Positions 1 through 21,350 of a stretch of 64,000 nt of DNA are shown one piece after another. How positions within the stretch are numbered: the first letter of the stretch is position 1; every line of letters begins with the position of its first letter. Location of the stretch: NCBI GenBank assembly GCA_965644315.1, contig CBFFRQ010000038.1, positions 186,001 to 250,000 on the forward strand, written 5' to 3'. The notes under the pieces are model-generated. The model had not been told where the DNA came from. It saw only the letters and a program-made list of their open reading frames with translations, and ran no database searches. The position numbers and the translations under genes were made by a program. The stretch is from Caecitellus pseudoparvulus. Its lineage: Eukaryota; Protista; Bigyra: Bicosoecida.

Positions 1-701
1 GCTCCAATCCACAGCTCCTGCACGAACTTGCCCTAGCGGCCGTGGTTCGCAAGCCACAGCGCAGGGTTTGAAACAGCGTCCCGGGAATTCAACGACATCT
101 CCTGCACACTGTCAGTCCCCCCCACGTCCAATCCAGCCCTCCAATTCAGTTCCATGCCGCGACTTGTAATCTGTGCGAGCTTGAAAACTGTGCATTGACA
201 GTGCGGCACTTACCTCAGCATTGCGAGTTGTGGAAGATACAGTCTTGTGACTCCCCCAATCTGACGGAGCCTCCGACTCTGCTGACACAGCTCTCCCCCC
301 CATGGCCATGGCTCGGCAGGTGGACAGGTCTGCGCAGCTTGCTTGCTCGATGAAAGATGGGACAGAAAGAATGTGCTTGGTGCGCTGCACTCACATCCGC
401 GCGCAGTGCTCGGGACGGACTACTGCGGGGCCGACCACACTTCGAGCAGTGGTCGAGCATTGCCCACCCCTTGCCAATGTTCCAACTTTCGCCTGAAACT
501 CCACATTTGCGTTGCAGCACGTACATGCAATTTCTAGTCCCAAGGTGCTTCTGCATCCTGCGACCTTCGCTGTACACGCGACTGTTCAGCAGGGCAACGG
601 CAGCTGTCGGCTGCGGAAATTGGCTGCCCGCGCTTTGGCTCCAAACGCAAGAGCCGACGCAGGCCGTGCCAACATCCACCCCGGTGTGGCGCTGTAGCAT
701 C

Positions 702-1377
702 ATGGCGGCAGATGGCTGCGTCACTCCCCCGCCGCAGCCCGTCACCGACGTGGAGACACGTTCCCCAAAGCTCCGAAAGCAACGCGCTGGCGAGAAGTAT
801 GGCCCAGACGGCTTCAGGCACCGTGCAGGCTGCGTCGTCGTGCGGGCAGGCGACGACGGTACGCCGGAGGTTTTCTTGTGCTCCTCCCGGAAGCAGCCTG
901 TCACCAAGACCCGCCGCTTCGTGCTCCCTGCGGGCGGTGAGTGTGCTGCAACGGCGTGCCGTGGAAGCACAAGCGCGCCGGCAACACGCTACGGGCTGCT
1001 TCCCCACAGGCATTGAAGAGGGAGAAGCGGAAGCGCAGGCGGCAGTTCGAGAGACGCAGGAGGAGGGCGGGGTCGTCTGTGGCAAGTCTCGCTGCGTGCT
1101 GCTCGGCACGTGGAGCGATGCCAAGCGGCGGAGCCACACGACGTACTTTGCGACCACCCTGGAATCACAAGAAAGCAGCCCAGAGGGCCGCCAGTGCCAG
1201 TGGCTGCCCGTGCCACAAGCCAAGGCTGTGCTCATGAAGAAGAACGGCATGTCTGCCGCGCTGGACTGCTTGCATGCGGCCCTGCTGACCGACCTCTGCG
1301 CCAGTGCGGCAGCGCCGGCTGCTGCGCCGGCAGAGTCACCAGGCGATGAGCAGCAGAGCAGCGAAATGGCGCCCTGA
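702..1377 (+). CDS. Nudix hydrolase, diphosphoinositol-polyphosphate phosphohydrolase (DIPP/NUDT3-like); 2 exons
   Basis: ATG 702. An intron at 937-1009 (GTGAGT...CACAG) joins FVLPAGG to IEEGEAEAQAAVRETQEEGGV, a complete Nudix box. The N-terminal 'KYGPDGFRHRAGCVVVR...VFLCSSRK' is typical of the DIPP subfamily. Confidence 0.85.
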
Positions 1378-1435
1378 GGGCAGCAGGGCAGCCCGATCCC
1401 ACATCTACATGAAGAGTTTTGCTTTCCTGCGTGAT

Positions 1436-1447
1436 CCAATGCATTGG
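1436..1447. promoter_or_regulatory. Palindromic CCAATGCATTGG between convergent Nudix and Twinkle stops; candidate bidirectional 3'-end signal
   Basis: The same AATGCA core occurs in sense orientation shortly after many stop codons in this window. Confidence 0.45.
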
Positions 1448-1464
1448 TCGCTGTGTGCACAGGC

Positions 1465-3724
1465 TCACTCCGCAACAATGTCTGCGTCAGGCCACCGCGA
1501 GGCCGCAGGCTTGTGCTGCGGGGGACTCGCGGGCAAGGCAGCCAGCTGCTCCTCCAGTGCTGTGGAGATGTCTGCTGCCAGGGCAGCATCATCCACCGCC
1601 GTCACCATGCTGTCTGCGTAGGTCGTCGTGGGAGCTGTCGGCTGCGGCGGCAGGGGCTGGGGGATGGGCAGCAGCTCCGGGTCGAAGCCGGGGGCGAAGA
1701 AGCGCCCTGACGCGCCGTGGTACTTCAGCGCCGTGCTGCCCAGCGTGCCGGCGTAGCGGTTCTTCTTGATGTCCAGGCTCTTCGCGCCGTCGCTGCCCAC
1801 CTGCAGGATCCAGACATTGTCCGCCTCCTGCGTCGCCTTGGCGGAGCCGAAGACAGAGGACAGGGACAGGGAGCTGCCAGAGGGCTCCTTGCGCGGGTGG
1901 ATGACCACCGACACCGACACGTTGCGGGAGGAGGCGAACTGCCGGAAGGCGTCCAGGGCGCGGTCCTGGGCGTCGAACTTGTCCGCGACGCCCGCCCCCA
2001 TCATGCGTGCTGCCATCATGAACTGCAGGTTGTCCAGCAGGATGTGCGAGACGTCGTGCCGGTACACGACGTAGTCCATGGCGTCCAGCACCGCCCCCAC
2101 CTCCGTGCTGCCGTAGTAGCGCAGGAAGAAGAGGGGCAGTCCCGACAACTCCTCCATGGCGGCGCGGAAGGCAGCCTTGTCCGCCAGCACCTCCCCGCCA
2201 TACCGCTGGCGCAGCATGGTCTTCACCAGGCGGGGCACGGGGATCTCGAAGCTGCCCCACATGGACGCGATGCCTGCCTCGGCCAGGTCCAGGGATAGCT
2301 GGGACAGCAGCGTCGTCTTGCCGCTGCCGGTGGGCCCCGTCAGCACAGTCAGCTCCCCCGTGCGAAAGCCGTGCGTGGCGTCCGTCAGGGGGGGCAGGGA
2401 GGTGTACTCTGCCCCCGTCCGGTGGGGCGGCGCGAACACCTCCGCCGCCACCTCCCCTGCCAGGTCGGCCAGTGTCAGCACCTGGTCGTGGTTGCAAGGG
2501 GTGGCGCCCGCCAGCACCTCCCCCAGGTCTGCTCCCGCCCGCAGCGCGTCGTTGGCATCCTTCAGGGGCGTGCCGTCGGACGCAGAGGGCGCCTGCACCA
2601 CCAGGCACCGCCCCCTGCCCAGCTTGTGCAGCACACGCTGCACGCCTGCCGACCCCGCAGCGTCCGCGTCCATCCACAGCGTGATGCGCTCGAAGGGCTC
2701 GAACAGCGGCAGGAGTTCGGGGGGCAGGGAGTTGGCGCCGTTGGGCAGGGACACGGCGGGCAGCCCCGTCGCCTGCCACACGGACATGGCGTCCAGCTCC
2801 CCCTCCGTCACCACCACCTCCTTGCAGCCGGGCGGGAGGGTGTGCAGGCCGAAGAGCCCCGGCTGGCCGCCGGCAGCCGCCGTCGGCTGGCTCTGCATGC
2901 ACCGCTTGTCCGTGATGGAGCGCAGTTTGGCCTTGGCAAAGGCCCAGGTGGTGCCGCCCAGCTCGCTGCGCAGGCAGCCGTCGGAGTGGGAGGCGGGGGC
3001 GAGGGATGGGAACACCACGCACTGGTGCGGCTGCCACTTGCCCTCCTGCATGAAGCTCCACTGCACGCCGCCCACGCCGTAGTGCTCCAGGGTGCTGCGC
3101 TTCAGCCCGCGTTGCTGGGTGAGGTACTGCAGCACGTCTGGGAAGCCGTTCTTGTGGCACAGCGCGGTGTGGGCGGTGCTCACGCTGTCCCCTGAGAACC
3201 GCGGGGGTGAACCAGGCTTGCGGGGTGCCTCTACGGGCGCCCGGGCAGGCTGCGCTGGCCGCTGCAGCTTCGGCACGTCCCCCAGCTCCCGCTTCAAATC
3301 GTACCAGGAGCCTGAGCTGCCGCACCGGTGGCAGAAGAATGCCCCCGTCCCGCGCTTGATGTACATCTTGTACATGTTGCTGCTCTTGCCTCCCGTGGGC
3401 TTCCCACACAGTGGGCACTCACGCACGACGAAGTGCGTGCCGTTTGCCTGCGCGAATCGAAGGAGAGAGTGTGGCTTGGACAGCTGAGAAACGCACCAAG
3501 GCAGAGCACTGCCTGCGCACCTTGAAGGACAGGCCCTTCCTGTCCAGATACATCTCTAGATCTGCATCTGGCAATTCGAAGTGCCTCGACACAAACGTGT
3601 CGTGCGCAATGGAGCCCAGCAGCGCCTGTGGTTGCAGGTGACGCAGACCGATTTCCGCACGCCCCGACACTCGCAGCAGCCCACTCCCAGCCACCCGACA
3701 AGCGACGCGGGCGGCACGAAGCAT
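1465..3724 (-). CDS. TWNK: Twinkle / T7 gp4-like organellar primase-helicase; 2 exons
   Basis: Arg-rich presequence-like N-terminus (MLRAARVACR). Intron 3448-3520. Zn-binding CPLC...CHRC; TOPRIM EGELDAMS, WMDAD and KDAND; Walker A GPTGSGKTT; ILLDNLQFM; HPRK; KATQEADN; KNRY. Confidence 0.92.
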
Positions 3725-3982
3725 GAGCTCTGAACTTCTTGCGCCTGAGTAAACACACGACCCTGCTGCAAGGCCTGCAGAAGCTCGCCGAGCGCTTTCT
3801 GATGCGCGCTATCCCTGGCAACGTGCCGCTGAGGCGCCAGACACTGCACGGCTCCACGCGTGTCACGAAGGAACTCATGCAGCTTTGCTGGAGAGACGGA
3901 GGTCATGCCAATGTGTTGTCAAACGCTGCATTGCATTGCGCCACCCGCCCCCCTCCCCACGCCGCACACACTCCCCGCCCCA

Positions 3983-6900
3983 TCAAATGTCCAGCTCGTC
4001 CACCTTCTCCACCCGCTCCTGCAGCGCGCTGAAGACATTGATCATGTCGCAGTTGGCTGTCAGGCGCTGGAACGTCAGCACGGACTTGAGCACAGCCATG
4101 TCCGTCGCCTCCCGCGCCTGCCCCGCCAGCGCCAGTCGCAGGTACATGGACAGGCGCGCCACCGGCAAGTGCTGCGGCAGCAACTTCAGCACCATGCGAC
4201 AGTCAATGGTGGTGGCGTGGCGCAGCAGTAACTCCTCGGCACGGTCCGCGTACACGTCCTGCATGCCCTCCGGCGCCTCGTAGAAGTACAGGTGCAGCAG
4301 GCGCCCGAAGGCGTCGTCGGAGCCGTCCTCCTGAAGCACTTGCTGCGCATATGCCTCCGCCCCCTCGTGGTCCTCCAAGTGCCGCACCAGCAAGTCCAGC
4401 GCCGTCGCGTGCTTGCCCATGCGCCGGGCCACCTGCACCTGCTCCGGCAGCAAGTTCGTCCCCCGCAGGGCGTCCCACACGCTGTCCGTGTTGAAGTCCT
4501 GCTTGGACCGCAGGACAGTCAGCAGCTTGGCGCGGGTCTCGGCGTGGGGCGTGTCTGGGGGCCAGGCCGCCTCCTGCGCTGGCAAGGCCACCGCTTGTGC
4601 CGCTGCCAGGGCCGCCCCGCTGCCACTGCCAGCTGCCGCTGCCTCCTTTACCACCCCCTCTTGGTGCAGCTTCAACGTGTTGATGAAGCTGAGCAGGAGC
4701 GCCGTGACACCCACCGTGCCGCCGCTCTGCAGCTTCAACACACTGTGCTCCAGGAACTGCTGCTGGCACTGGGGGCCGTTCCGCTTCAACGACTCGAGGA
4801 ACGCTGCCACGGCCGTGCCGTCCAGCTGCCCCTCCCGCTCAGGCGACGTCAGCGCACGCATGCCCGCCTGCACCAGGCGCTCGTCCTCCGACTCCAGCAG
4901 CCATGGCAGGAAGCGCTTGAGGACGTTCAGGTCCGTCTCCTGGGACAGAATGTCCACCGTGTCCTCCACACCGTCGAAGCCCGCCTCGCTCAGGGCGTGA
5001 GTGCCCACCTTCATCAACAGCTCCAAAGCAGCCACGCGCTCACCCCGCACTCGCTGCAGCCGCGCAAGGCACTGGTACAGCTGGTACCTCTTCAGGTACT
5101 CCTGCGCATCCTCCAGAGACACGTCGGTGGGGCTCTGCAGGAACCCCTGCAGAGCTGCCATGTCGTCCGCCAGGCAGTACACCCGCATGAGGGCCGTGTC
5201 CAGGAGGATGCTGGGGTGGCTACCGTCGGGGAAGCCCAGCTCCCCCCGCCGCCGCTCCAGCACCAGGCGCACCACGCGCATGGCCCGCCCGATGGTGCTG
5301 ATGACCGTGTCCCGGGGCGGCTTCTGGCCCCCGCCTGCCTTGGTCAACACTGCAGTCGCCACGGTTTTGAAAGACACTGGCGGGGGCATGGCTTGCCCTG
5401 GCTCCGGCCGGTCGTGGTCGTGGGTCGCCGCGGCAGCCACACTCCAGTGCCCCGCCACGATGCCCTGCAACAGGCACGGCGAGAAGAGCTCCGGCGTGTA
5501 CCCCAGCTTCAGCCGCCGGCTCTGCAGCTCGGGGAAGATGCACAGCAACTCCTGGGGCGGCAGAGCAGCCTGCTGCAAGTGGTGCGTGGCCTTGTCCAGG
5601 TGCAGCCCCAGCAGCAGCAAGCGCCCGGCAAGCTCGTGGAAGTGGCGCAGGCGGTGCGGCAGTTCGCCCGGGGGGGTTGTGTTCAGCAAGATGCTGTACG
5701 CTGTGTCGCTGCTGGGCACAGGCTGCTGCAGCAGCTGCGTCACCTGCTGCCCGAAGTCCACGTGGGACAGACGCAGGAGCGCCTTGGGGGTAGCCACCAG
5801 CACGGGGTGCCGGCCCCGCTCGTGTGGGCCCATGCCCGGGATCCAGCCGTCGCACATGCCCACCGCGCGGTCGAACTCGCTGGGCACCGTCCACCGCTGC
5901 ACGGAGCGCCCAGGGTCCAGCTGGGAGTGCACCTCAACTGTCTGGCCGTCTTTGGCCAGGGCCAGGATGTATGGGAAGCAGTAAGCCAGGTCCATGGGGT
6001 CAGCCGCCCACTGAATGTGCTTGGCCGCGGGCGAGTTGGCCACCGGCACCGCGACGCCGTCAGACGTGATGAACACGCCTTTGTGCCCTGTGGAACTGAG
6101 CAACAGCTCCCCCTCCAAGTCCGACGGCGCGGCAGTGCCACCCCCTGCCCCTGCAGCGCCGCCTGGCTGCCACAGCCTGGCCTCCTGCTCGCTGCGCACG
6201 GGCGGGGACGGGATGAACTTGATCATGGGCTCCGTCCCCGCCAGCTTCACGCCAAACACGTCACGCGGCACAGCTGCACCCGAAGACCCATCTGCCTCCA
6301 TGTCGTCCAGGAGGTTGTACTCCCGCCTGTACCCCACAGCGATGGTGCTGCCATAGTACCCCAGCCGCCGCACAGGGTCCGGGAAAGCCAGCTCCCGAGG
6401 CCCCTCCAGCGCCAAGCCACCCCCCTGCGCGCCCCGCAGCGTAAACAGCAGCAATTTTCGGTTCGTCGTCGCCACGGCCAGGCGGTGCAGAGGCGGGCGC
6501 GCAGAGTTCACCGCCAGCAAGCTTGCCTTACCCTTGGCCTTCACATCCAGCTCCTCGCTGGTGCCGGTGGCCATGTAGTGGGCGAAGACACGACCTGCCT
6601 TGATGCCCAGCACCACCGCCAGGGACGGCACCACTTCCAACTGTGTCACTGGGGAGCGGGAGCCCACGCTGACTTCGAAAGTCTCGTGGTCGCTGGACGG
6701 CGTGCCAGACTGCAGAGCAAGGCAGCGAAAGAAGTGTGCCGCAAAGCGCCGAGCAGGCTACCGCCGGGACATCGCACGCACAGACATGTCCACCTTAATC
6801 ACACGCCCTGACTCGGCCCCTGCATACACCGTAGAACCTGCTCGAGCGCGAAGCAGGGCACCGTGCTTGCAAGCCAATGCGGCACTGTGGCCCGATTTCC

Positions 6901-7007
6901 GCACCATGGCAAGCAACGCAGCTGAGCTTCTCGGCGGAGATCCTCACACATGTGTCCATAGTGAACGCGCTGCGAGGCCCACTTGTGTAGTCTGATGCCG
7001 CCGCCAT
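3983..7007 (-). CDS. Vps39/Vam6/TGFBRAP1-like HOPS/CORVET subunit (CNH propeller + clathrin-repeat solenoid); short 5' exons
   Basis: CNH-like motifs (TIAVGYRREYNLL, HIQWAADPMDLAYCFPYILAL, VEVHS), then LLDTALMRVY, RMGKHATALDLLVRHLEDHEGAEAY and VLKLLPQHLPV. The 5' exons from ATG 7007 are inferred from GT/AG signals near 6905/6838. Confidence 0.8.
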
Positions 7008-7617
7008 GGTACAGGGCTGCTACGAGAACTCCGTCGGCCACCACACTGGCCCAGGGGAGACCTCCTCTTCAGCGCAAGCTTACACAGACCCTCTGCAACG
7101 AAGATCACTTCCTCAACGAAACCAAGAGTGCAGCGAGGCAATCACCCTGCATTCACCCTCATCACATGATGCGCAGACGGCACGCCTGGCTTTTCTTTTT
7201 GAAATTGCACCGCTTGTGGGTTGAGGTTACTCTGCTCGTACAATTGAAGCGTAGCGGGCGGTGGTGGGAGCAGGGGGATGAAGGTGACGAGGCACCGTGT
7301 GCGAAAGGCCCTGACAGAGACAAATGGGGTAAAGCGTGGCGCAGGGCAGGAGACCGTTGGCTGTGCCTGGTAGGAGGTGGGTGAGGGAGGGAGGCACCAA
7401 GTCAGCTCTGGCGCCTGAACGTGAGGGCATGCAGCAGGTGCAGGCGAGTGGTGATGCCTTTGGGGGTGTAGTAAACGAACTGTTGCCCGCTTCTCTTTTG
7501 AGGAGCAAGTGTGGGTCAGGTGTGGTTGAAGACGAGAGGTGACAATACATTGAATTCCTACCCCTGCAGTGCATCGAGCAGCTAACCCAAAAAAACAAGA
7601 GGTTGCATGACATGTGA

Positions 7618-10600
7618 CTAGCATAAGTTGACACTCTTCCGAACGGAGCTTTGCTGGGGCCTTGCTGCTGAAAATGACACTCTGCCACGCTCATCCAAGT
7701 GACGATCAACTGACAAACGTCTATTAGCCTCCGGTACTGTGAGCTCAGGGAAGGGTTGACGTGAAGCTGCCGGAGAACGTGCACTAAGGAGGCCCAACAC
7801 TGTTGAGCCAGCTCCGGCCACGGATCTTCCCGACCTCTGGGAACCACTTGCAGGCAGTGGAAGCACTGGCAAGTCTGGAGCACGCTGTGGGTACAGAGTG
7901 TTGGGCTTCGTTGTTGGTCTTGGGACCAGGGTTGGCTGTGTCACACTGCTGCGTCGGAATACTGGGTTTGTTCCTTGAAGTCTTCGCCCGCTTTCGACGC
8001 TAGCAAGAGGGTTCGGCCGCAATGGGGGTATTCCACTCTTGGTTGCGGTGCCCTGTGTTGGCAGTTGGGCATCACTCCCAGCCGGCATGACCACCAGGGT
8101 TGACCCCGAGTCACCCACCACCTCCGCCATGCCAGTCTCCACGCTCAGTCCCTGCTCCTGCACCATGCCCAGCACACTCAACACATCCGACGCGGGTCGA
8201 GACGCTGCCGGCCGCACCTCGCCTCGCCGCACACACCGCTGCGCCAACGCCCACACAATGCTGCCCACACCCGGCACTTGGCTGTCAGTCACATCGCCCA
8301 GCTGACCACTGCTGCCACTTCCTGCACTGGTTGGCCCCAGCTCAGGCAGCCATGCTCGCAGGCGCCGACCCACAAGTGCCAGCAGTGCTCGCACTCGGCC
8401 ACTGTACCCTCGAGCGACAGCCATCGCCAGCCACAGCAGCACAAGCACATGCCCGATGCCTGAGATGAAGGATGCAGCAGTGGCCAGCCCGCCACCCACC
8501 GTACCAACACCCACACACACCACCTGCACCAGGATACCGCCATGGGCCAGGACATCCAGGTCGCTCAGCTCAGCCAGCGCCCAGGGCCGACGGTGCTGCA
8601 CGAGGGCCATGCTGCCCGCCACACCTACACCCACACAAACGATGCGAGCCACGGTGGATGTCGTCATGCTGCCCATGACCGCCACCAAGACGACGAGGGC
8701 CATTTGCAGGGCAGGGAAGGCGTGGGTGGGCAGGAGGCGCCCGGCACCGCAGCAGGCACGCTCACTGGCGCGTGCTGCCGCAAAAGCCGCTGCTTGGAAT
8801 GCCTTGCCTGCCCCTGTTGCGTGTGCGAGGCGGACTGCTTGCTGTGGCGTGTACTGTGTGCGGTATCCTTTGCTGCAAAAGGCAGGAATGGTCGCCCCTC
8901 GTGGCAGTAGGTGTTGCGACCTCCGCCACTGCCGCCACGCCAGCACACTCAGCACACCCACTGTGGCAGCCAAGCACTGCAGCGTCAGGGAGGCAGCGTA
9001 CCCGCCCACGTCAGCCGCATGCCCAGCGACATCGTCCGGACCGGACATGCCACGCCACACTGGCTGCAGCCCCACGATGCGGGCCTGGCCTTGGATGACA
9101 CTGGGCACCACCTGCATGTACGCTGCTGGCGCAAGGAGCAGGAAGATGGTGGTCCAGGTCTTGCCAGGTGCCGCGCGAGCGCACCACAACACAGCGGCAC
9201 TGACACACAGCAGGACGGCGCCATAAACGGCCATGATGATGTTGGCAATGTCATGCGGGCTGCGACTGTCTCCTCCGCCCATGAGACACCCGGCACTTGG
9301 CATTGTCGCGACGCCAGCTCGCCCTGTAAGTGCGCCCAGGATGCCCAGGACATCCACGCCTTGGGCTGGTTCAAGCTGGCTTGCGTAGAGAGTGCCGTTG
9401 GGCGGCAGAGTCTGCTCTTGGCCTGCTCGCCACGGCTGGGCCATGCCACAGACATCGGTCCACTGGCCCAGCGTGTGGGCTGCCGCCTGCAGTGTGCCTG
9501 GCGTGTCGGCCACCAACAGCGCCACCTGCCCCGCCATGCCGATGTACCACATGGCCAGGCGCAGGCCACCACTGAACAGGGTTGTTGCAACACGGTCTGG
9601 AGCGCGTGCATACCCATGCACTGCGAAGAGGGACATGACCAGTCCCAGCGCCATCTGTACAGCTGTGGCGCCTGCCTTGACGATACCCGGGGCCACGCCA
9701 TTGTACGGACACTGGCGGCATGTGGTGCAGGGGGAGGTCGCAGCCCAGCCGTCGGTACAGGTTTGGCATGCGAGGCCGCCGTGTCCAGGCTGGCAGGCCT
9801 TGAGGAGGCGCACGTCAGCGTGGGGGAGGCATGAGCCTGGTCGAGGGCATGGGAGGATGAGGGCTTGTGGTGAGGAGCAGTGTTGAGCACATGCGAGCTG
9901 GGCTGGGAAGCGGGGGACTGTGTAAGGAGCTGCTGCCGGGTTGAGTGAGGGGTGGGTGAGTGCCCAAGCTGAGTGGGGTGGAGAAGGGTGGGTGACGGCA
10001 GATGGGCTGGGAGAAGCTGGGGCAGTGGGCGAAATTGTGCTGGAGTGGGACGGTGCTGCTGTGGGGCTGCTGGTCATTGTGGTGCTTGGTGTGATCGTTC
10101 GTGTTGGACTCGCACTGCTACTACTGCTACGGCTGCTGCTGGCACTGGGTGTGACACTGGGCGTGTTGGATGAGGATATGGTTGATGAAGAGGTGGTTGA
10201 AGGTGTTGGACTGCAAGTTGTGGTTGGGCTCGCTGTGCTGCTCGGGGTCGTTGTGGTTGTAGAAGTGGCAGTGGGTGTCAGGCTCGCAGTGCTTGTTTGG
10301 CTGGCTGAAGCTGTGGGAGAAGCAGATCCACTCGGTGTCACAGATGTGCTCGAAGTCACAGATGAAGTTGGGGTCACGGTGGGAGTGTGTGAAGCGCTTG
10401 GGGTGCTGGACGGCGTAACTGAAGGCGAAGGAGTGTGTGAAGGGGTTGGGGAAGGTGTACCAAGGGGTACGATCTGACCAGGCAAGCACACCACATCAAC
10501 AGCAGCCGGACAAATGCCTGCTGTGCAGTTCCACACACCGTACAGCGTGCTACCCATACATGATCCTTCTCCTGTGCAAGAGATGCTGCACAGACCAGGA

Positions 10601-13600
10601 GTGGACGGGCGGGTGCAGAACATGCTGGTGTTCGAGCAAGAGTGGTTGGCAGAGCAAAGGACAGCAGCGCCTTCTTGCACAATGATGGCGTTGTCGCCTG
10701 AGGTGATCGAACAGCTGTGCGGTTCATCGCAGTTGAGTGAAGTGTTGGACAGAGGAGGTGCTGTTGGGCAGCCACTGCACATGCACAAGCGAGAGCTGGA
10801 GGGAATGGGACCATTTTGCATGGAGCAATTGATGGCGGAGGGAGATGGGGGCGGGCATGAGCTTGCGAAGGGGGATCCGGAAACGTCCAAAGCTGCTAGA
10901 CTGGTGAGGCTGTCAAACAAGCCCAACGGCAAACTCTTCAAAACATAGCTGTTGCTCAGGTCTATTTCTGTGATGCTGCTCGGGCTATCAAACACGCCGG
11001 GTGACAGGCTGGTCAGGAAGTTTCCTCTCAAATCCAGGCCTGTCAGGCTGGTGAGATTGGCAAACACACCCACAGGCAGGCTGGTCAGATCGTTGCTGCT
11101 CAGGGACAGGTCGGTGAGGCTGGTGAGATTGGCAAATACGCCCACAGGCAGGCTGGTCAGATCGTTGCTGGTCAGGGACAGCTGTGTGAGGCTGGTGAGA
11201 TTGGCAAACACACCCACAGGCAGGCTCGTCAGATCATTGCCGACCAGATCTAGGTATGTCAGGCTTGTGAGGGCATCAAACACGCCCACAGGCAGACTGG
11301 CCAGATCGTTGGATCCCAGATTCAGGTATGTCAGGCTTGTGAGGGTATCAAACACGCCCACAGGCAGACTCGTCAGATCATTGCCGGCCAGATTCAGGCT
11401 TGTCAGGCTTGTGAAGTTGTCAAACACGCCCACAGGCAGAATCGTCAGATCGATGCTGAACAGGCTCAAGCTTCTGAGGCTTGTGAGGGTATCAAACACG
11501 CCCACAGGTAGACTCGTCAGATCGTTGTATCCCAGATTCAGGTATGTGAGCCTGGTGAGGGTATCAAACACGCCCACAGGCAGACTGGCCAGATCGTTGG
11601 ATCCCAGATCCAGGCTTGTGAGCCTGGTGAAGTTGTCAAACACGCCCACAGGCAGACTCGTCAGATCGTTGGATCCCAGATCCAAGCTTGTGAGCCTGGT
11701 GAAGTTGTCAAACACGCCCACAGGCAGACTCGTCAGATCGTTGTATCCCAGACTCAGGCTTGTGAGCCTGGTGAGGGCATCAAACACGCCCACAGGCAGA
11801 CTCGTCAGATCGTTGGATCCCAGATCCAGGCTTGTGAGCCTGGTGAGGGTATCAAACACGCCCACAGGCAGACTCGTCAGATCATTGCCGACCAGATTCA
11901 GGATGGTCAGGCTGGTGAGGTTGTCAAACACGCCCACAGGCAGACTCGTCAGATCGTTGGATCCCAGACTCAGGCTTGTCAGGCTTGTGAGGGTATCAAA
12001 CACGCCCACAGGCAGACTGGCCAGATCGTTAGATCGCAGATCCAGCCTTATGACGCTGGTGAGGGTATCAAACACGCCCACAGGCAGACTCGTCAGATCA
12101 TTGCCGGCCAGATCCAGGCTTGTGAGCCTGGTGAAGTTGTCAAACACGCCCACAGGTAGACTCGTCAGATCATTGCCGGCCAGATTCAGGCTTGTGAGCC
12201 TGGTGAGGGTATCAAACACGCCCACAGGCAGACTCGTCAGATCGTTGTATCCCAGACTCAGGCTTGTGAGCCTGGTGAAGTTGTCAAACACGCCCACAGG
12301 CAGACTCGTCAGATCGTTGGATCCCAGATCCAAGCTTGTGAGCCTGGTGAAGTTGTCAAACACGCCCACAGGCAGACTCGTCAGATCGTTATTACGCAGG
12401 CTCAGGCTTGTGAGGGTATCAAACACGCCCACAGGCAGACTCGTCAGATCGTTGGATCCCAGATCCAGGCTTGTGAGCCTGGTGAAGTTGTCAAACACGC
12501 CCACAGGTAGACTCGTCAGATCGTTGTATCCCAGACTCAAGCTGGTAAGGGTATCAAACATGCCCACAGGCAGGCTCGTCAGACCGTTGTATCCCAGATC
12601 CAGGCTTGTCAGGCTTGTGAGGGTATCAAACACGCCCACAGGTAGACTCGTCAGATCGTTGGATCCCAGACTCAGGCTTGTGAGCCTGGTGAAGTTGTCA
12701 AACACGCCCACAGGCAGACTCGTCAGATCGTTGTTACGCAGGCTCAGGCTGGTGAGGGTATCAAACATGCCCACAGGTAGACTCGTCAGGTCGTTGCCGG
12801 CCAGATTCAGGTATGTCAGGCTTGTGAGGGTATCAAACACGCCCACAGGCAGGCTCGTCAGATCGTTGGATCCCAGACTCAGGCTTGTGAGCCTGGTGAA
12901 GTTGTCAAACACGCCCACAGGCAGGCTCGTCAGACCGTTGTATCCCAGATCCAGGTATGTGAGCCTGGTGAAGTTGTCAAACACGCCCACAGGCAGACTC
13001 GTCAGATCGTTGCCGGCCAGATCCAGGCTTGTGAGGGTATCAAGCATGCCTACAGGCAGACTCGTCAGGTCGTTGGATCTCAGATCCAAGCTTGCGAGCC
13101 TGGTGAAGCTGTCAAACACGCCCACAGGCAGACTCGTCAGATCATTGGATCCCAGATCCAGGCTTGTCAGGCGTGTGAGGGTATCAAACACGCCCACAGG
13201 CAGACTCGTCAGATCGTTGTATCCCAGATCCAGGCTTGTCAGGCTTGTGAGGGTATCAAACACGCCCACAGGTAGACTCGTCAGATCGTTGGATCCCAGA
13301 CTCAGGCTTGTCAGGCTTGTGAGGGTATCAAACATGCCCACAGGCAGGCTCGTCAGATCGTTGTATCCCAGATTCAGGTATGTCAGGCTTGTGAGGGTAT
13401 CAAACACGCCCACAGGCAGACTCGTCAGATCATTGCCGGCCAAATTCAGGTATGTCAGGCTTGTGAGGGTATCAAACACGCCCACAGGCAGACTCGTCAT
13501 ATCGTTGCCGGCCAGATTCAGGATGGTCAGGCTTGTGAGGGTATCAAACACGCCCACAGGCAGACTCGTCAGATCGTTGGATCCCAGATTCAGGTATGTC

Positions 13601-15075
13601 AGGCTTGTGAGGGTATCAAACACGCCCACAGGTAGACTCGTCAGATCATTGCCGGCCAGATTCAGGCTTGTCAGGCTTGTGAGGGTATCAAACACACCCA
13701 CAGGCAGACTCGTCAGATCATTGCTGCTCAGGTCCAGGTATGTCAGGCTGGTCAGGTTGTCAAACACGCCCGCAGGCAGACTCGTCAGATCATTGCTGCT
13801 CAGGTACAGCTCTGCAAGGCTGGTCAGGTTGTCAAACACACCCACGGGCAGGCTGATCAGATCGTTGTTGTTCAGGTAAAGCTCTGTGAGGCTCGCAAGG
13901 CTGTCGAACACACCCACAGGCAGGCTGGTCAGATCGTTGCCGCCCAGATTCAGGCTTGTCAGGCTTGTGAGGTTGTCAAACATGCCCACAGGTAGACTCG
14001 TCATATCGTTGGATCCCAGACTCAGGCTTGTCAGGTTGGTGAGGGTATCAAACACGCCCACAGGCAGACTCGTCAGATCATTGCCGGCCAGATTCAGGCT
14101 TGTCAGGCTTGTGAGGTTGTCAAACACGCCCACAGGTAGACTCGTCAGATCGTTGGATCCCAGATCCAGGCTTGTGAGCCTGGTGAAGTTGTCAAACACG
14201 CCCACAGGCAGACTCGTCAGATCGTTGTATCCCAGACTCAGGCTTGTGAGCCTGGTGAAGTTGTCAAACACGCCCACAGGCAGACTCGTCAGATCGTTGG
14301 ATCCCAGATCCAGGCTTGTCAGGCTTGTGAGGGTATCAAACACGCCCACAGGCAGACTCGTCAGGTCGTTGGATCCCAGACTCAGGCTTGTGAGCCTGGT
14401 GAAGTTGTCAAACACGCCCACAGGCAGACTCGTCAGATCGTTGGATCCCAGATTCAGGTGTGTCAGGCTTGTGAGGGTATCAAACACGCCCACAGGCAGG
14501 CTCGTCAGATCATTGCCGCCCAGATTCAGGTATGTCAGGCTTGTGAAGTTGTCAAACACGCCCACAGGCAGACTCGTCAGGTCGTTGTTGTTCAGGTATA
14601 GCTCTGTGAGGCTCGCAAGGCTGTCGAACACACCCACAGGCAGGCTCACTAGATTATTGTGACTCAGGGCCAAGCTCGTGACACCATAGAGGCTGTCAAA
14701 CACACCCTCAGACAGGTTGACTACGTTGTTCCTATGAATGCGGAGAGTTGCTAGGCTTGTGAGGCCGTCAAACACACCCACAGGCAGACTCGTCAGGTCG
14801 TTGTTGTTCAGGTACAGCTCTGTGAGGCTCGCAAGGCCGTCAAACACACCCACAGGCAGGCTGGTCAGATCGTTGCCGCTCAGGTCCAGGGTTGTGAGGC
14901 TGGTCAAGTTCTGAAAAGCAGTCGCGTAAATGCTCGTAAGCGCACTTTCTGAGACTTGCAGGGTTGTGTATGGGCACGCGTTGCAGTCTGTCAAGGTGCC
15001 GTTCTCCACGCTACAACATGCAGGGACGCCTCCCATCACATCGGCCCACAGACTCGCCAAGCACACCACCCACAT
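7618..15075 (-). CDS. Giant intronless LRR surface receptor: signal peptide, ~58 LRRs, Cys-rich region, Ser/Thr stalk, Cys-rich juxtamembrane motif, ~7-9 TM helices, cytoplasmic tail
   Basis: Single ORF 7618-15447. Likely start at MWVVCLASLWADVMGG (15075) or MLARRK (15129). Repeat LTSLTxLxLxxNDLTSLPVGVFD; S/T/P stalk ~9960-10465; CQPGHGGLACQTCTDGW...CRQC before several hydrophobic segments at ~8400-9690. Confidence 0.85.
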   Translation of the reverse strand: MWVVCLASLWADVMGGVPACCSVENGTLTDCNACPYTTLQVSESALTSIYATAFQNLTSLTTLDLSGNDLTSLPVGVFDGLASLTELYLNNNDLTSLPVGVFDGLTSLATLRIHRNNVVNLSEGVFDSLYGVTSLALSHNNLVSLPVGVFDSLASLTELYLNNNDLTSLPVGVFDNFTSLTYLNLGGNDLTSLPVGVFDTLTSLTHLNLGSNDLTSLPVGVFDNFTRLTSLSLGSNDLTSLPVGVFDTLTSLTSLDLGSNDLTSLPVGVFDNFTRLTSLSLGYNDLTSLPVGVFDNFTRLTSLDLGSNDLTSLPVGVFDNLTSLTSLNLAGNDLTSLPVGVFDTLTNLTSLSLGSNDMTSLPVGMFDNLTSLTSLNLGGNDLTSLPVGVFDSLASLTELYLNNNDLISLPVGVFDNLTSLAELYLSSNDLTSLPAGVFDNLTSLTYLDLSSNDLTSLPVGVFDTLTSLTSLNLAGNDLTSLPVGVFDTLTSLTYLNLGSNDLTSLPVGVFDTLTSLTILNLAGNDMTSLPVGVFDTLTSLTYLNLAGNDLTSLPVGVFDTLTSLTYLNLGYNDLTSLPVGMFDTLTSLTSLSLGSNDLTSLPVGVFDTLTSLTSLDLGYNDLTSLPVGVFDTLTRLTSLDLGSNDLTSLPVGVFDSFTRLASLDLRSNDLTSLPVGMLDTLTSLDLAGNDLTSLPVGVFDNFTRLTYLDLGYNGLTSLPVGVFDNFTRLTSLSLGSNDLTSLPVGVFDTLTSLTYLNLAGNDLTSLPVGMFDTLTSLSLRNNDLTSLPVGVFDNFTRLTSLSLGSNDLTSLPVGVFDTLTSLTSLDLGYNGLTSLPVGMFDTLTSLSLGYNDLTSLPVGVFDNFTRLTSLDLGSNDLTSLPVGVFDTLTSLSLRNNDLTSLPVGVFDNFTRLTSLDLGSNDLTSLPVGVFDNFTRLTSLSLGYNDLTSLPVGVFDTLTRLTSLNLAGNDLTSLPVGVFDNFTRLTSLDLAGNDLTSLPVGVFDTLTSVIRLDLRSNDLASLPVGVFDTLTSLTSLSLGSNDLTSLPVGVFDNLTSLTILNLVGNDLTSLPVGVFDTLTRLTSLDLGSNDLTSLPVGVFDALTRLTSLSLGYNDLTSLPVGVFDNFTRLTSLDLGSNDLTSLPVGVFDNFTRLTSLDLGSNDLASLPVGVFDTLTRLTYLNLGYNDLTSLPVGVFDTLTSLRSLSLFSIDLTILPVGVFDNFTSLTSLNLAGNDLTSLPVGVFDTLTSLTYLNLGSNDLASLPVGVFDALTSLTYLDLVGNDLTSLPVGVFANLTSLTQLSLTSNDLTSLPVGVFANLTSLTDLSLSSNDLTSLPVGVFANLTSLTGLDLRGNFLTSLSPGVFDSPSSITEIDLSNSYVLKSLPLGLFDSLTSLAALDVSGSPFASSCPPPSPSAINCSMQNGPIPSSSRLCMCSGCPTAPPLSNTSLNCDEPHSCSITSGDNAIIVQEGAAVLCSANHSCSNTSMFCTRPSTPGLCSISCTGEGSCMGSTLYGVWNCTAGICPAAVDVVCLPGQIVPLGTPSPTPSHTPSPSVTPSSTPSASHTPTVTPTSSVTSSTSVTPSGSASPTASASQTSTASLTPTATSTTTTTPSSTASPTTTCSPTPSTTSSSTISSSNTPSVTPSASSSRSSSSSASPTRTITPSTTMTSSPTAAPSHSSTISPTAPASPSPSAVTHPSPPHSAWALTHPSLNPAAAPYTVPRFPAQLACAQHCSSPQALILPCPRPGSCLPHADVRLLKACQPGHGGLACQTCTDGWAATSPCTTCRQCPYNGVAPGIVKAGATAVQMALGLVMSLFAVHGYARAPDRVATTLFSGGLRLAMWYIGMAGQVALLVADTPGTLQAAAHTLGQWTDVCGMAQPWRAGQEQTLPPNGTLYASQLEPAQGVDVLGILGALTGRAGVATMPSAGCLMGGGDSRSPHDIANIIMAVYGAVLLCVSAAVLWCARAAPGKTWTTIFLLLAPAAYMQVVPSVIQGQARIVGLQPVWRGMSGPDDVAGHAADVGGYAASLTLQCLAATVGVLSVLAWRQWRRSQHLLPRGATIPAFCSKGYRTQYTPQQAVRLAHATGAGKAFQAAAFAAARASERACCGAGRLLPTHAFPALQMALVVLVAVMGSMTTSTVARIVCVGVGVAGSMALVQHRRPWALAELSDLDVLAHGGILVQVVCVGVGTVGGGLATAASFISGIGHVLVLLWLAMAVARGYSGRVRALLALVGRRLRAWLPELGPTSAGSGSSGQLGDVTDSQVPGVGSIVWALAQRCVRRGEVRPAASRPASDVLSVLGMVQEQGLSVETGMAEVVGDSGSTLVVMPAGSDAQLPTQGTATKSGIPPLRPNPLASVESGRRLQGTNPVFRRSSVTQPTLVPRPTTKPNTLYPQRAPDLPVLPLPASGSQRSGRSVAGAGSTVLGLLSARSPAASRQPFPELTVPEANRRLSVDRHLDERGRVSFSAARPQQSSVRKSVNLC
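10880..14965 (-). repeat. Coding tandem array of 72-bp units (four 63-bp variants), ~58 LRRs including caps
   Basis: The + strand core tcaaacacgcccacaggcagactcgtcagatc recurs every 72 bp. Units were counted from LxLxxN motifs in the translation. Confidence 0.95.
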
Positions 15076-17970
15076 GATTCTTTTCCACCCTGCTTCCGTT
15101 GCTGTCATCCTTTTCCTCCTAGCTAGCATGCCTGCGCGGTTTGCTGTGCCAGGGCGCAGAATGGTCTGCGAGGTCGATTTCACGCCTCGCATTTCTGAGC
15201 CGCCACGTGCACGAGCCAGGATCCCTGTTGGGTGCAGCCCTGTCTTCCAGGTATTCATCATGCACAAATGGCCATAAGAAGTGCAACTGCTTGCGTCTCT
15301 GCGCCATTCACACTGCACCGTCGTTGTCGCCTGTACTTGCATCTTGGCCACGCTCCCACGCGGTTTGCCCAAACAGTGCCCTTGAGGCCTGCCCGTGCGC
15401 GAGCCGACAGGCAGGCAGGAAACGCGAGTCGCCTTCAATTGATTCACGTGTCCTCTGGCTCAAGGAAAACAACGCGCAACCTCGTCGTGTCAACAGAGTG
15501 AAGAAGACGTCTGACATGAACAGGTCGACGCGAGCCTCACTCCTCAGGTCACAACTTGAAGCAGAGGCTGCGATGCTGCCCAATCGACTGGGTAGTGTTT
15601 GATTTTGTGTGGTCAATGCTCTCGTGTGCAAAGTGCGCTGCGCGCAAGGAGGCGCTGGGGGGGCTCAAACTGAGCAAGGTTGGGGCTGGCTCAGTTTCGC
15701 TCGAAACGCAAGTTGACCTTTCCACGTCACCTTGTGAGGCAGCTGCAAGCGAGCACACCATCTGGTTCCCGGTGACGCACATCCCTCCATGACGCATGAA
15801 CACCGCATCCCTGACCTCCCTCTGTTCGCACCCAAGGTGGGCCTGTGGTGTTGACTGTGCTGAGGCGTGCCACCCACGACGCACCACAAGTCGCACTTCG
15901 ACAATATTCCATCCGCAGCGGCCTGCCTTAGCGAATACACCATCAATCGATGTTCTCTGTGCATCAATTGTCGCGGTTTTGAACCGGGTGGCAAGGCCCT
16001 GCGAACGCCACTTGACCAGCACGACCACTCCAACAAATTCCACTGCATACCTATGTTGGGGCCAAACACGGCCAACGCGGCCCGCCACGGTTGCTGCAAC
16101 ATGTTCGATGATCATTTTCGACTCGGGTGTGAATCTGGCGGTCCGTTCCTCCAGCGAAGTCTCCCTGCCTTCGACGCTTCCAACCGGAGCGCAAGCTTGG
16201 GACACGCAGCTGCCGTAAGGGTGGCTGCAGGATTTGAGTTTTTCACAGCTCGAACATCACCCAGGATAATGGGATCACGCTCACGTCTCTCAACACAACT
16301 CTGCTCCGCAGTAGTGGTCGACTTTCTTCGCCAGCTCCACGCATTGACTCTCCCATGAGGGTCACAGGATCAGGCCTCAGCAGTCCAATATGGTATGCAC
16401 CCACAAGCCGACACATAAGCTCCGTGCCGACATTAAACGTTCTTAGTCGGTTTAGCATTCTCTGTCAGCGAAACATCGGTCCTAGACCTGGATGTTGGGA
16501 GAGTCTGTAAGCCCAGCCAAGCAGCACCAGGAAGCGACCCACTGACCATAATACACGCCCAGATGGCACTGGCACGCGCACTATGGTGTAATTGCTTGCA
16601 GTGCAGCTCTCAGTTCGTGCCTCCTTCTCTATGGCGCTCCTGCCGTGCAGGCCCCCTCCACCAGCTGCAGCTTGAGAACCACGCAGCAAGCATGGACGCA
16701 AGCGAACCAGCCACACTCCAGGACCAACACTTCAAGCCGTACGAGCGCATCATGCAGCATACCACCGTGTGATTTGGTCTTCCTATAGCGCCAATCTCGC
16801 CATATGCTTGCTCGGAGCCTCCCTCTTCGTTTCCACTGCCATGTACCAGTTTCCGCACCCTTTCACCAGCCACGCCAGCAGTCAGTGTTGGTCAAAGTCG
16901 ACCTCGATCCGCTAAATAATCATACCGCCCATGAAATGGATCAGCATTCGGTGCAATGATACACTTAACTGCGGGAGAAATTTGCCCTGCCTCTGCCGCT
17001 GCTGTACTTCAGCGGGCTGTGGTCTCAGACTGGCGCAGCTGACAGTCCCCAAGCACAACCGGCACATCCTGTGCCCAAGGGTCCCCATTCAGGAATCGCA
17101 AGTCATGATCAATGATGCACATTCACCCTGATGCTCAGTTCTGACCCCAAGCCCCGACGAGCGAAATTCCACCCGCTGCCCTGGTTCGCATTAGACTCGT
17201 TCTGTTCAGTTGAGTCTGTGAGCCAAAGCCTTTCGACGAAATACGCACAAGCTACGAGTAAACATTCCACAAAAGTAACCGTGGTTACACCCAAAAAGCG
17301 AAGCGTTTGTATTTCATGAACTTCAGCGCCTTCGAAACGGAATCCCCTCAAGCTCGGGCGAGCTCTCCTGGTCTAGGTGCCAAGGCACCCTTCCCCAGGA
17401 CGAGAGAGAAGGAAGAAAGACAGGAAAAATTGAAACAGACAGGTACTCCGTGAACGGTGCTGTCAGAGGGGGGATCTGTGCTTGGAAGGTGGAGAGGTAC
17501 TGAGCTTGCCCCAGTCGACACTGACACCCCTCCCCGAGTGCAGAACCCCCCCCTTGCGGGAAGGCAACAACAAAAGCGTGAAACGGACACATCCTCCGCT
17601 ACGGCATAAAACCAACCGAACCACCTCATGGACGACGGAAACCCAGTCTGAAACACAAGCATATTTTGTCAGTTGATCACCCGATTTCGGTGCGAATTTG
17701 GTGATCGAGGACTGTGTCAGGTGGTGTGTGCTCTTCTTTTAGGGGTTGCGGTTTCTGCACAAGATGCCCAGCCGCATTCTTCGCATATACACCGATACAG
17801 CCCCTGCAATTGGACCTCCGCAGGCTTGACAACATCTTCGTTCCGCGTCTCCCTCTGTTGCACACTTGCTGCTCTTCTGCGCGACGTCACGGAGCGTAGC
17901 TTGTACTTGCCTTCTTCAACCTGAGTCTTCAACTTCAACACCAGCCACAAGCATCCTCGCGGCAATCACC

Positions 17971-19062
17971 ATGGCAACCTTCGATGACCCAGCACATCTC
18001 AAGAGTCAATGGAAAGTTGCTTGTGAAGAGAAGAGTGCAGATCAGCTGTGGCAACTCTTGCAGCAAGCCAGCGCTGAGACTGACACCCTGACTGAAGCAC
18101 TGGATAGTTCAGACACAACAGCTGGGTTCCAAGTTGGTTGCCCAGAAGGCCATTTGGACCTGATGCGTGGCTTGCTAGCTCTGACAGGTAGCCTGGCTGT
18201 GGATGTGCATGCGGCGGATAAGCTTGGACCCGAAGCTGCCTTCCGACGTGCATGCTACAGAGGCCATACAGACATCGTACGTGAGCTGCTAGCTCTCACT
18301 GGGGCGCGGGAAGTGGATGTGCATGCAGCAGATGCTATTGGACCCGAGGCGGCCTTCCGAGGGGCAAGCCACAATGGTCGCACAGACGTTGTGCGTGAGC
18401 TGCTGGCCCTGACTGGGGCGCGGGAAGTGGACGTGCACGCAGCGGATAAGGCCGGACCTGAGGCCGCCTTGCGCTTTGCCTGCCGCAATGGCCACACAGA
18501 CGTTGTGCGTGAGCTGCTAGCTCTGACTGGGGCGCGGGAAGTGGATGTGCATGTTGCGGATAGGGATGGACCTGAGGCCGCCCTCCGAGAAGCAAGCTCC
18601 AATGGTCGCACAGACGTTGTGCGTGAGCTGCTGGCCCTGACTGGGGCGCGGGAAGTGGACGTGCACGCAGCGGATGAGTTTGGGCCTGAGGCCGCCATGC
18701 GCATGGCATGCGCCAATGGCCACACAGACGTTGTGCGTGAGCTGCTAGCATTGACTGGGGCGCGGGAAGTGGATGTGCATGCGGCGGGCTGGGATGGACC
18801 TGAGGCGGCCTTCCGAGAGGCATGCGCCAAGGGTCAGACAGACGTTGTGCGTGAGCTGCTAGCTCTGGCTGGGACGCGGGAAGTGGACGTGCACGCGGCA
18901 GACCTGGATGGACCCGATGCTGCCTTCCGAGAAGCAAGCGCCAACGGGCAAACAGACGTCCTGCGTGAGCTGTTGGACCTCACGGGTGAAAGAGCCATCC
19001 CAGCCCACATCCGGCAACAAGAAAGTGTGACAGTCACGCATGCTGCAGGCGATGCAGAATGA
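17971..19062 (+). CDS. Intronless ankyrin-repeat protein with 7 near-identical 38-aa units
   Basis: ATG 17971. Unit VDVHAADxxGPEAAFRxAxxNGHTDVVRELLALTGARE matches the ankyrin helix-turn-helix pattern (A..NGH.DVVR.LL...VDV) with a longer loop. Confidence 0.85.
   Translation: MATFDDPAHLKSQWKVACEEKSADQLWQLLQQASAETDTLTEALDSSDTTAGFQVGCPEGHLDLMRGLLALTGSLAVDVHAADKLGPEAAFRRACYRGHTDIVRELLALTGAREVDVHAADAIGPEAAFRGASHNGRTDVVRELLALTGAREVDVHAADKAGPEAALRFACRNGHTDVVRELLALTGAREVDVHVADRDGPEAALREASSNGRTDVVRELLALTGAREVDVHAADEFGPEAAMRMACANGHTDVVRELLALTGAREVDVHAAGWDGPEAAFREACAKGQTDVVRELLALAGTREVDVHAADLDGPDAAFREASANGQTDVLRELLDLTGERAIPAHIRQQESVTVTHAAGDAE
18199..18996 (+). repeat. Coding tandem array, 7 x 114 bp
   Basis: Unit starts (gtggaYgtgcaY) at 18199, 18313, 18427, 18541, 18655, 18769 and 18883. 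Confidence 0.95.
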
Positions 19063-19776
19063 GTTGGCACCAGTACTCCGCGTGGGCGGCATGCGGTGCT
19101 CTTTCTGAGATCTAGTGGTGAGGGGCAAGCGTGATGGGGATGCCCCAATGCAGTGACGGTGGCCGGCAAGGCGCCAGGAGTGGCTTCCACGCATCCAACT
19201 TCACATGCACCTGGCCAGCGTGCACTGCTCGCAAGACGGACTGCAGCACCTGGACACCCGTATCAGGGCCGATCACTGGTATGTTGTGTCCCAGTACGAC
19301 GCGGCAGCCTGCACTGTGCAATACAGTGCCCCACCGCCACTCATTTAGCGGCCTCCTTGGTGTGTCTGTCAATCATGCCAGGGGCAGGCTAGGTGCTACT
19401 TGCATTCCAAGTGCCAGCTCTTGCCGAGCAGGGTGCTCCGCCGGGTGGCAAGACGCGCTTGCAGTCCCTGTGGTTTAGGCATGCATGAGTGCACCATGCA
19501 ATTGGTGTGGCCTTCTTCCTTCGAGCTATTTGTGTCCCTTGGATGGCTGATGCAGCCGCAGAACGGCACCAAGGCCAAGCGTTGCCTGCTTTCGCTGGTT
19601 CTTTTGATTGCAGTTAACCAAAGAATGCCAGCCGTCAGAGAAACCTGTGCCACAAGTGGCCGAGAGCCAAGTCGTCTCAAGAGAAACTGAGACCTTGGCG
19701 TGGAGTGGATGGCGAGCAACCCTCTCTTGCACGGTGCTCGCTTGCGCTTCAGCTGCAACTAGGCACCTGATACGGC

Positions 19777-20703
19777 TCAGTCTTCCCGCTGGTGAGCTTT
19801 GAGTGTGTACCAGAAATATCCGAAGCCTACATCCAGCTTGGAGTGCTTCAGCGAGGCCCAGCGGGGTGTGCCATCAGATTGTGGGCCCTCTTCCCCGAGG
19901 TACTGCTTGCGAAAGTGCGGCTGGCTGAAGGAAAGAGAGAGAAAGAGACCTCCGGGTTTGAGGACGTGCTGTACTCCACGCATGACAGCATGGGCCGCCT
20001 GCAGTAGGTCTTCGGGAGCGGACCAGACATCCCCGCCATGTGCCAGCAATGCATCCAGTGCGGCCTTGTCCAGCACCACGTCGAAGGAGTCGGCCTCGAA
20101 GACTTCGGGCAGGGCAAGCATGTCTGCCACTTGCCATGTGATGCCAGGGCGGGCTTCGGAGTGGGCCTTGCTCATGGCCTCGATCACGGTCGGGCTGATG
20201 TCCGTGGAGACCAGGTTGGTGAACCCCGCATCGTACTGTGAGGCACCCGTGCGCGGCCGAAGAGGGGGTGAAGCGGGGCACGCTTCAGGACGTGGTAACA
20301 GCACGCACCATGTCCGCAGTCAGCGTCGAGTTCCCACATCCTATCTGCTCGACGAGGGAAAACGCTTGCTTGTGCGCCAAGTGCACCAGCGCACGCAGCG
20401 CTCAGCTCACCAGCAGCACGCGGTCGTCATGAGCGATGGCTGTCGAAATGAAGTCCTTCACTTGGTCGAATGTGGCTAGCCAGTCGTATTCCTTTTCTCT
20501 GCACGCGGTTAACTTGTGGGCCTGAGGTCATGCAAAGCGGAGACAGCCACGGCTCGGTGCGGTAATTGGTTCACGCGAACGCACTTTCCGAACCTCCAGT
20601 CCCAGTACTTTGCATCAGTGTACGCCGCAGTGGATCGGGGTGTAACACCTTCTTCCACTGGGAAAGGTGCTGCTTGCACTTCCCCCCGTTCGACACTTGC
20701 CAT
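19777..20703 (-). CDS. Class I SAM methyltransferase, EEF1AKMT4/METTL13-N-like; ~4 exons
   Basis: Spliced motifs YTDAKYWDWRF, EYDWLATF, RVLL-GNSTLTAD, GFTNLVSTDISPTVI, SFDVVLDKAALDALL, VLKPGGLFLSLSFSQPHFR. Confidence 0.85.
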
Positions 20704-21350
20704 GATCAGTGCAGGGTTTGCGACAGTTGAGTGCCTTGCTCCCTGGCACACACTGCCGACCTGCGCAGCGCAGCTATTTGAGGTTCACGAACGCAGTTTG
20801 CATAAATTTGGCGAAATGTGCCAGGGGCAACTTGGGAGCGTCAGTGGTTGGTCTTGTTTGTGGTATTTATCAGAATGAACGTGAGTCACGTGTCTATTCT
20901 TCTTCGACACTCCTAAGATGAGCTACGACGGCTAAGTAAATAGCTTTTGACTTTGGGTCTTCCCTCCACTGACTGAACTTTGTGCATCGGAAGACACCAC
21001 AGGCAACGCTGCTGCCTCAGTGGGGCTGTGCACAACAAATTTCTGCCGAGTTGAGTCCATATTCGCCTGTGTGGCTCGTCCTCGGGTGATTTTCTGCTCT
21101 GCGGATGGAGTGCGTGTCACGCCGTGTTTGCTCAACGCAGGTGTGAAAGGAGTGGACTGACCGACATCTTGCAAGCCTGACTTGCATTGCTTGCGGCAAG
21201 GTCGGACTAAATCGTTTTTCCAGCGTGATTTGCTGTTGAGGGTGCGCGCTGATCGAAGATGGACCAGTTACAATCCATACATCGGACTGACGGTTGTGAT
21301 GGTGATGTGCTAACAGTTTTACATAATCAATTTTTAGCGTGTTTTACAGA

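Follow-up and report, generated by a model that had tools for sequence, protein, structure and literature searches.

The locus described here, in the bicosoecid protist Caecitellus pseudoparvulus, raises the question of whether a gene for a leucine-rich repeat (LRR) receptor and a divergently transcribed gene for an ankyrin-repeat protein form one recognition module or are merely neighbours. The window analysed is a stretch of 64,000 nucleotides (GCA_965644315.1, contig CBFFRQ010000038.1; G000:C38:186001–250000, G000 being this 30.6-Mb eukaryotic assembly of 215 contigs), and all positions below are window positions unless a contig is named. Open reading frames (ORFs) at 7618–15108 (minus strand) and 17971–19062 (plus strand) bear out the two intronless, divergent genes of the first-pass annotation; a VPS39-like gene lies to their left and a methyltransferase gene to their right, and their starts are separated by 2863 bp. 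Little is known about the means by which free-living flagellates recognise prey, viruses or one another, and literature searches found no description of these LRR and ankyrin families. The LRR gene is likely to encode an optional surface receptor or adhesin whose family evolves by birth and death and whose diversity comes from ordinary germline recombination, beside an unrelated cytosolic binding protein of a second family. The neighbours would be members of two large gene families and not a fixed pair. What is new here is a presence/absence allele, probably real, that removes the receptor block and keeps the ankyrin side. Expansions of LRR and ankyrin families are frequent and seldom open to experimental test; with a null allele of defined junction, present, absent and heterozygous strains should be typable by one PCR, and wild strains would serve as natural knockouts of the receptor.

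The window DNA has near-identical copies in marine metagenomes and several other runs, none of them an RNA run. On one metagenome scaffold, L045 (ENA ERZ23499060; no Ns), 473 unrelated bases replace positions 7235–17362. L045 is 98.5% identical to window positions 1–7234 and 95.5% identical to 17363–17518; each flank occurs once in G000, the two follow in the expected order, and the 473-base filler was not found in G000. The sample behind L045 also has the ankyrin 3' end beside the methyltransferase gene, and the 3' end or the upstream flank of the ankyrin gene was found in every sample examined. The two alleles are identical from 17378, which is exactly where contigs of X8 and X5 break in an assembly fork, and the X8 contig depth is 22.8 on the LRR side versus 42.3 beyond that position. 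From the depth step and the fork, X8 looks hemizygous and X5 mixed. X1 and X3 have two alleles across the block. Logan contigs from four runs form a chain that starts at the LRR 5' end, crosses the spacer and the ends of the ankyrin gene and enters the methyltransferase gene, so the LRR-ankyrin arrangement is not an assembly artefact. A JGI metagenome scan with VPS39 found nothing, and BLAST with a joined query of L045 and the window gave no further homology. The comparison points to a presence/absence allele, probably real, of the receptor alone. An accessory island of 12.6 kb had been proposed; part of it (7235–17362) is accessory between strains, but the ankyrin gene is outside it, in the constant part, and varies between alleles in its repeat make-up.

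Whether the short allele arose by deletion or the long one by insertion is about an even choice. On the side of insertion, the right breakpoint matches the end of spacer homology to contigs C67 and C114 (17359–17365), and the filler has the appearance of native, unique DNA. On the side of deletion, the spacer and the ankyrin flanks are both ~30% diverged from their paralogues versus ~9% between alleles; the paralogue divergence is the older of the two and therefore fits joint arrival and later loss. Neither a target duplication nor terminal inverted repeats were found at the block ends (6-nt matches only), and on these grounds a transposon-borne cargo of the Pack-hAT or KDZ kind was rejected. 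Around the ankyrin gene, too, no convincing inverted pair of transposon ends was found.

The flank left of the junction is itself dimorphic. In five aligned sequences, 10 fixed differences fall in 115 bp (7102–7216), separating the window and L054 from L044, L045 and L046, compared with 1 in the preceding 142 bp. In L054, from another run, the window-type flank continues past the junction, and L044 and L046 have the L045-type flank. Such a pattern, with both alleles present in independent samples, would be expected of an old presence/absence polymorphism under balancing selection, in which the receptor protects against a virus or bacterium, or is used by one for its own ends, and otherwise carries a cost. 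Strain divergence reaches 7–9% at the junction flank versus 0.7% in the VPS39 ORF and 1.5–2.7% in several other spacers, and indels at plant resistance (R) genes have higher junction divergence than other indels (PMC5127803). However, the same study finds dimorphism around all large indels examined, R gene or not; other non-coding stretches of the window reach 7% (31870–32360) and 20–29% (20700–21200); only five sequences are available; and the excess of nonsynonymous change described below is not significant. We regard balancing selection as a possible but doubtful addition to the preferred reading, with which it is compatible. By analogy, the closest population-genetic match for the LRR locus is the plant R-gene presence/absence locus: at Arabidopsis RPM1 and RPS5 a whole LRR gene is likewise present or absent between conserved neighbours, with a dimorphic junction flank (PMC5127803), although those genes encode intracellular nucleotide-binding LRR receptors (NLRs) with known ligands and the protein predicted here is a multipass protein of the cell surface. 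The stronger proposal, that allele-specific shuffled binding faces on a common membrane signalling module form a balanced polymorphism and hence R-gene-like recognition in a single-celled protist, appears unlikely at present.

The first-pass annotation had suggested that the two genes might form a sensor/partner pair, a surface LRR sensor and a cytosolic ankyrin protein placed head to head and co-regulated. This has the divergent orientation of two repeat-protein genes in common with the head-to-head sensor/helper NLRs of plants (PMC9528088). In G000, where the neighbourhood tests use match coordinates alone, a divergent close ankyrin lies within 10 kb of 4 of the 14 assessable LRR heads (the window, C67, C112 and C114), far above chance. 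Nevertheless, no such neighbour accompanies 10 of the 14 heads or 24 of the 28 close ankyrins, loss of the LRR gene leaves the ankyrin gene in place, and the gap ranges from 2.9 to 8.2 kb, with a relic of another ORF inside it at the other three sites (4.5–8.2 kb). Unlike in paired plant NLRs, the protein classes here are unrelated, linkage is not constant and one gene is lost alone. All four linked LRR genes rank among the closer relatives of the N-cap (head), and the spacers of the window, C67 and C114 are alike at 68–69%; because of this common spacer and close relatedness, the four loci are probably not independent support, and the linkage suggests common descent. Other metagenomes (L041, L042) have a related ankyrin gene of 571 aa that is flanked by a kinesin-like gene and by a faint LRR gene on the same strand, so no divergent arrangement is conserved. 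A sensor/partner pair is thus very unlikely.

The regular neighbour of the ankyrins is a different gene. A third ORF family faces 21 of the 28 close ankyrins with its 5' part, mostly ~790 bp away; it, and not the LRR gene, is the usual neighbour. No match to it was found in the window's LRR-ankyrin spacer. This family has 43 matches, with intact frames of ~1250–1300 aa that are shorter or broken beside ankyrins; its loci include L007:118–729 (minus strand), L009:3–830 (minus strand) and, in G000, C99, C13, C68, C38:179932 and C38:160573. A KDZ/Zisupton identity, a weak Atlas lead, was not confirmed by Pfam PF18758 and was dropped. Close to where C62 begins, an NTPase ORF (weakly AAA_22/NACHT-like) occupies L006:3071–4084 (plus strand), directly 3' of an ankyrin paralogue.

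Both families are large. The LRR head has ~17 paralogues in G000, some of them in broken genes. For the ankyrin N-cap, at least 148 relatives were counted; 28 are close, and many lie near the start of a contig or on a small one. TTAGGG telomere arrays occur in the assembly and start contigs C8, C53, C150 and C163, among others (pattern mapping); a subtelomeric position is established for some loci and presumed for the rest. We propose that two unrelated members of these expanded families have come to adjoin away from the chromosome ends, which in this genome would be patchworks of such genes. The adjacency would stem from segmental copying of a subtelomeric block and not from functional partnership. 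The LRR gene would then segregate on its 10.1-kb block as present or absent, the ankyrin gene staying behind with alleles of differing repeat make-up. The concave LRR face may bind an extracellular ligand, be it prey, a virus or another cell, and the membrane module, homogenised across paralogues, may anchor the receptor or pass a signal. Several points weigh against this reading. The short allele is spanned by one scaffold only, the support from X8 and X5 is indirect, and the reads resource has flat contig depths and gaps where records were filtered out. With 0.06 LRR-ankyrin neighbourhoods expected by chance, the four observed make the linkage non-random; its common descent is in turn our interpretation. 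At C112 spacer homology was not detected. Finally, the receptor function is read from the anatomy of the LRR protein alone.

That anatomy is set out in Table 1. The ATG at 15108 is the probable start, and in other haplotypes an A>G change at 15128 removes an upstream ATG at 15129. A hydrophobic leader was found in the LRR protein and none in the ankyrin protein, in agreement with the surface and cytosolic locations assigned to them at first reading, and the overall layout suggests a cell-surface receptor or adhesin. The nearest solved structures of the array are designed LRRs, SHOC2, LRRC15, LGR4/5, TLR3 and VLRA. The juxtamembrane domain gives a weak match to PF24633 in 17 of 17 aligned LRR paralogues (best E 1.4e-4). 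A long low-complexity tail follows the membrane module. With its large ectodomain set on a Cys domain next to the membrane and a bundle of helices, the protein resembles protist receptors of the DUF7630 and Ephrin_rec_like kinds with a TRP C-terminal-like bundle. Language-model features (Atlas, 0.93) pick out the same DUF7630, TRP C-terminal and Ephrin_rec_like receptors as look-alikes of the membrane module, a lead only: Pfam PF06011 gave no match to the module, a word search, uninformative on longer proteins, found no relatives, and the AlphaFold model of the module is unreliable (pLDDT 38). Membrane modules fall into two pools, 12 paralogues at 83–88% identity and about as many at 40–44%, and the heads are just 56–70% alike, a difference that fits homogenisation of the membrane part. 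At C67:19214–24450 and C114:14000–19300 the head and upstream DNA are close to those of the window LRR gene and the membrane module belongs to the other pool (41–43%), as would result from head/tail exchange.

Table 1. Features of the LRR-ankyrin locus and its immediate neighbours (window positions)
Feature	Position	Strand	Basis
VPS39/TGFBRAP1-like left neighbour	3983..6787	-	ORF scan
Dimorphic junction flank	7102..7234	.	Alignment of five sequences
Presence/absence block, 10,128 bp: LRR gene, 380 bp of 3' flank and 2.25 kb of 5' flank	7235..17362	.	L045 junction, X8/X5 fork
LRR receptor ORF, 2496 aa from ATG at 15108	7618..15108	-	ORF scan
Multipass membrane module, ~8-9 helices	8400..9690	-	Hydropathy, alignment
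Juxtamembrane Cys-rich domain, DUF7630-like, below curated cut-off	9700..9890	-	Pfam
Ser/Thr/Pro-rich stalk, S+T+P up to 82%	9950..10459	-	Composition
Cys-rich C-cap and Cys domain; 56-70% identity to 15 paralogues	10460..10871	-	Alignment
Array of 57 typical-class LRR units, mostly 24 aa, four of 21 aa	10872..14940	-	Repeat analysis
Probable signal peptide; hydrophobic residues 11-29	15030..15108	-	Hydropathy
Upstream spacer of LRR gene, no recognised protein	15109..17362	.	Homology and ORF scan
Ankyrin upstream flank, common to a mostly subtelomeric ankyrin subfamily, 67-75%	17570..17970	+	Homology
Ankyrin ORF, 363 aa; N-cap and seven 38-aa units (18199-18996); no signal peptide	17971..19062	+	ORF, repeat, hydropathy
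Ankyrin downstream flank, common to paralogues	19063..19202	+	Homology
Methyltransferase right neighbour, last exon	19777..20304	-	ORF/exon reading

Tandem repeat analysis gave periods of 72 nt for the LRR array and 114 nt for the ankyrin array. The units are not near-identical, as had been thought: mean DNA identity is 0.81 among LRR units and 79% among ankyrin units. The fast repeat shuffling postulated for both arrays is well reflected in the data. In the LRR array, 239 of 351 informative site pairs fail the four-gamete test, linkage within the 72-bp unit falls off with distance (rho -0.36, p=0.0005), and exact repeats extend up to 132 bp. With 57 units it is the longest array in its family, the paralogues having an estimated ~3–35. 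It matches itself at 80–87% DNA identity and any outside DNA at 75% at best (genome search, lower bounds), and has therefore grown within its own locus through unequal crossing-over and sub-repeat conversion.

Sub-repeat mosaicism of this kind, and a unit consensus of the same LRR class, recall the variable lymphocyte receptors (VLRs), in which a dedicated enzyme would rewrite arrays from donor cassettes in a programmed or somatic process. VLRB of lamprey and hagfish shares 24-aa typical LRR units with a variable concave face, Cys caps, a Thr/Ser-rich stalk and mosaic units with the protein described here. Its assembly draws on about 430 cassettes and CDA2 (PMC13590357); by contrast, the C. 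pseudoparvulus gene is complete and open in the germline assembly (2496 aa, 57 units). A genome search with the array DNA found no VLR-type donor cassettes, all outside matches falling within other full or broken paralogous genes. In place of the glycosylphosphatidylinositol anchor of VLRB the protein has 8–9 hydrophobic segments and a long C-terminal tail. No recombinase was found among the long ORFs of the window that were scanned, as the first reading had it, nor anything in the spacer ORFs; no deaminase was found among the scanned window ORFs, the genome not having been searched for one. VLR-like assembly is therefore extremely improbable here, and the analogy does not extend beyond the repeat class. 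The ROCO-LRR and NB-ARC-TPR genes of Ectocarpus (PMC3341825) are comparable as birth-and-death families with shuffled repeats and a candidate role in recognition. In those genes each repeat is one exon and diversifying selection has been reported (PMC3341825), whereas here the arrays are intronless, shuffling acts on a scale smaller than the repeat, a GTPase or NB-ARC domain is missing, and the excess of nonsynonymous over synonymous differences per site (pN/pS) is not significant.

Variation is indeed concentrated on the predicted binding faces, at LRR concave positions 17, 19, 21 and 22 and ankyrin positions 8, 9, 15, 17 and 20. Scaffold positions of both arrays are under purifying selection (pN/pS 0.066/0.265, ~0.25, in the LRR array; 0.073/0.405 in the ankyrin array). 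At the six concave x positions of the LRR units pN/pS is 1.18, with a bootstrap confidence interval of 0.51–1.93, so that the data fit relaxed constraint and positive selection alike; the supposed excess of nonsynonymous change at surface sites is not significant. At the ankyrin variable sites, chosen after the fact, pN/pS is 0.46/0.39. Concave pN being about equal to pS, along with the segregating null allele and the broken family members, is what neutral repeat turnover would produce, in which slippage and crossing-over reshape the array, purifying selection holds only the scaffold, the surface drifts and the gene is dispensable cargo. Yet the 7.5-kb frame is still open after many recombination events, the scaffold is constrained, and few residue types recur at the variable sites. 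We consider purely neutral turnover rather unlikely and retain the reading of a receptor or adhesin diversified by germline recombination.

The ankyrin array shuffles as well. In two independent metagenome assemblies, one allele carries a unit with the body of unit 6 (2 differences) and a unit-5-like hairpin tip (2 differences, compared with 10 to unit 6), which may reflect an array shorter by one unit or else conversion over a short tract. The variable positions of the ankyrin units are taken to be the hairpin tip and the first helix of the fold. A constant scaffold with variation in these places is also seen in designed ankyrin repeat proteins and natural ankyrin arrays, but the unit here is 38 aa long, the family is a natural one of at least 148 genes, and such a variable surface is general to ankyrin repeats. 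On the 3' side of the gene, at 19177, the window haplotype lacks ~455–500 bp that are present in X5, X8, L052, L053 and the paralogue L002.

As for the surroundings, the region has the low G+C content attributed to it (0.576 versus 0.631 for the rest of the window); this is not a mark of foreign DNA, because other intergenic stretches of the window are lower still, at 0.51–0.52, and foreign origin on this ground was rejected. The spacer upstream of the LRR gene has homologues at 65–69% identity on C132 and, in each case ahead of an LRR paralogue, on C67, C114 and C134; it differs by 4.5–7% between strains. No hidden gene was found in it, a Pfam scan of the spacer ORFs giving no match. In the X8 allele, ~205 bases of this spacer (15866–16072) are swapped for unlike sequence. 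The VPS39-like neighbour is a single ORF of 894 codons with a probable short 5' intron, suggested by GT..AG and an in-frame stop. Beyond the methyltransferase gene, the stretch at 20700–21200, in the spacer that separates this gene from tRNA-Leu (21351), has the highest strain divergence seen, and the stretch at 46000–49000 is low in G+C (0.46–0.51) and lacks long ORFs. DNA 98.8% identical to the region is present in the Symbiodinium sp. KB8 assembly GCA_905221625.1 (L047; protein P0241), which therefore probably holds this organism as a contaminant. Telomere-repeat arrays also lie inside contigs, kilobases from their ends, at G000:C5:10582–10994, C134:15988 and C145:32704.

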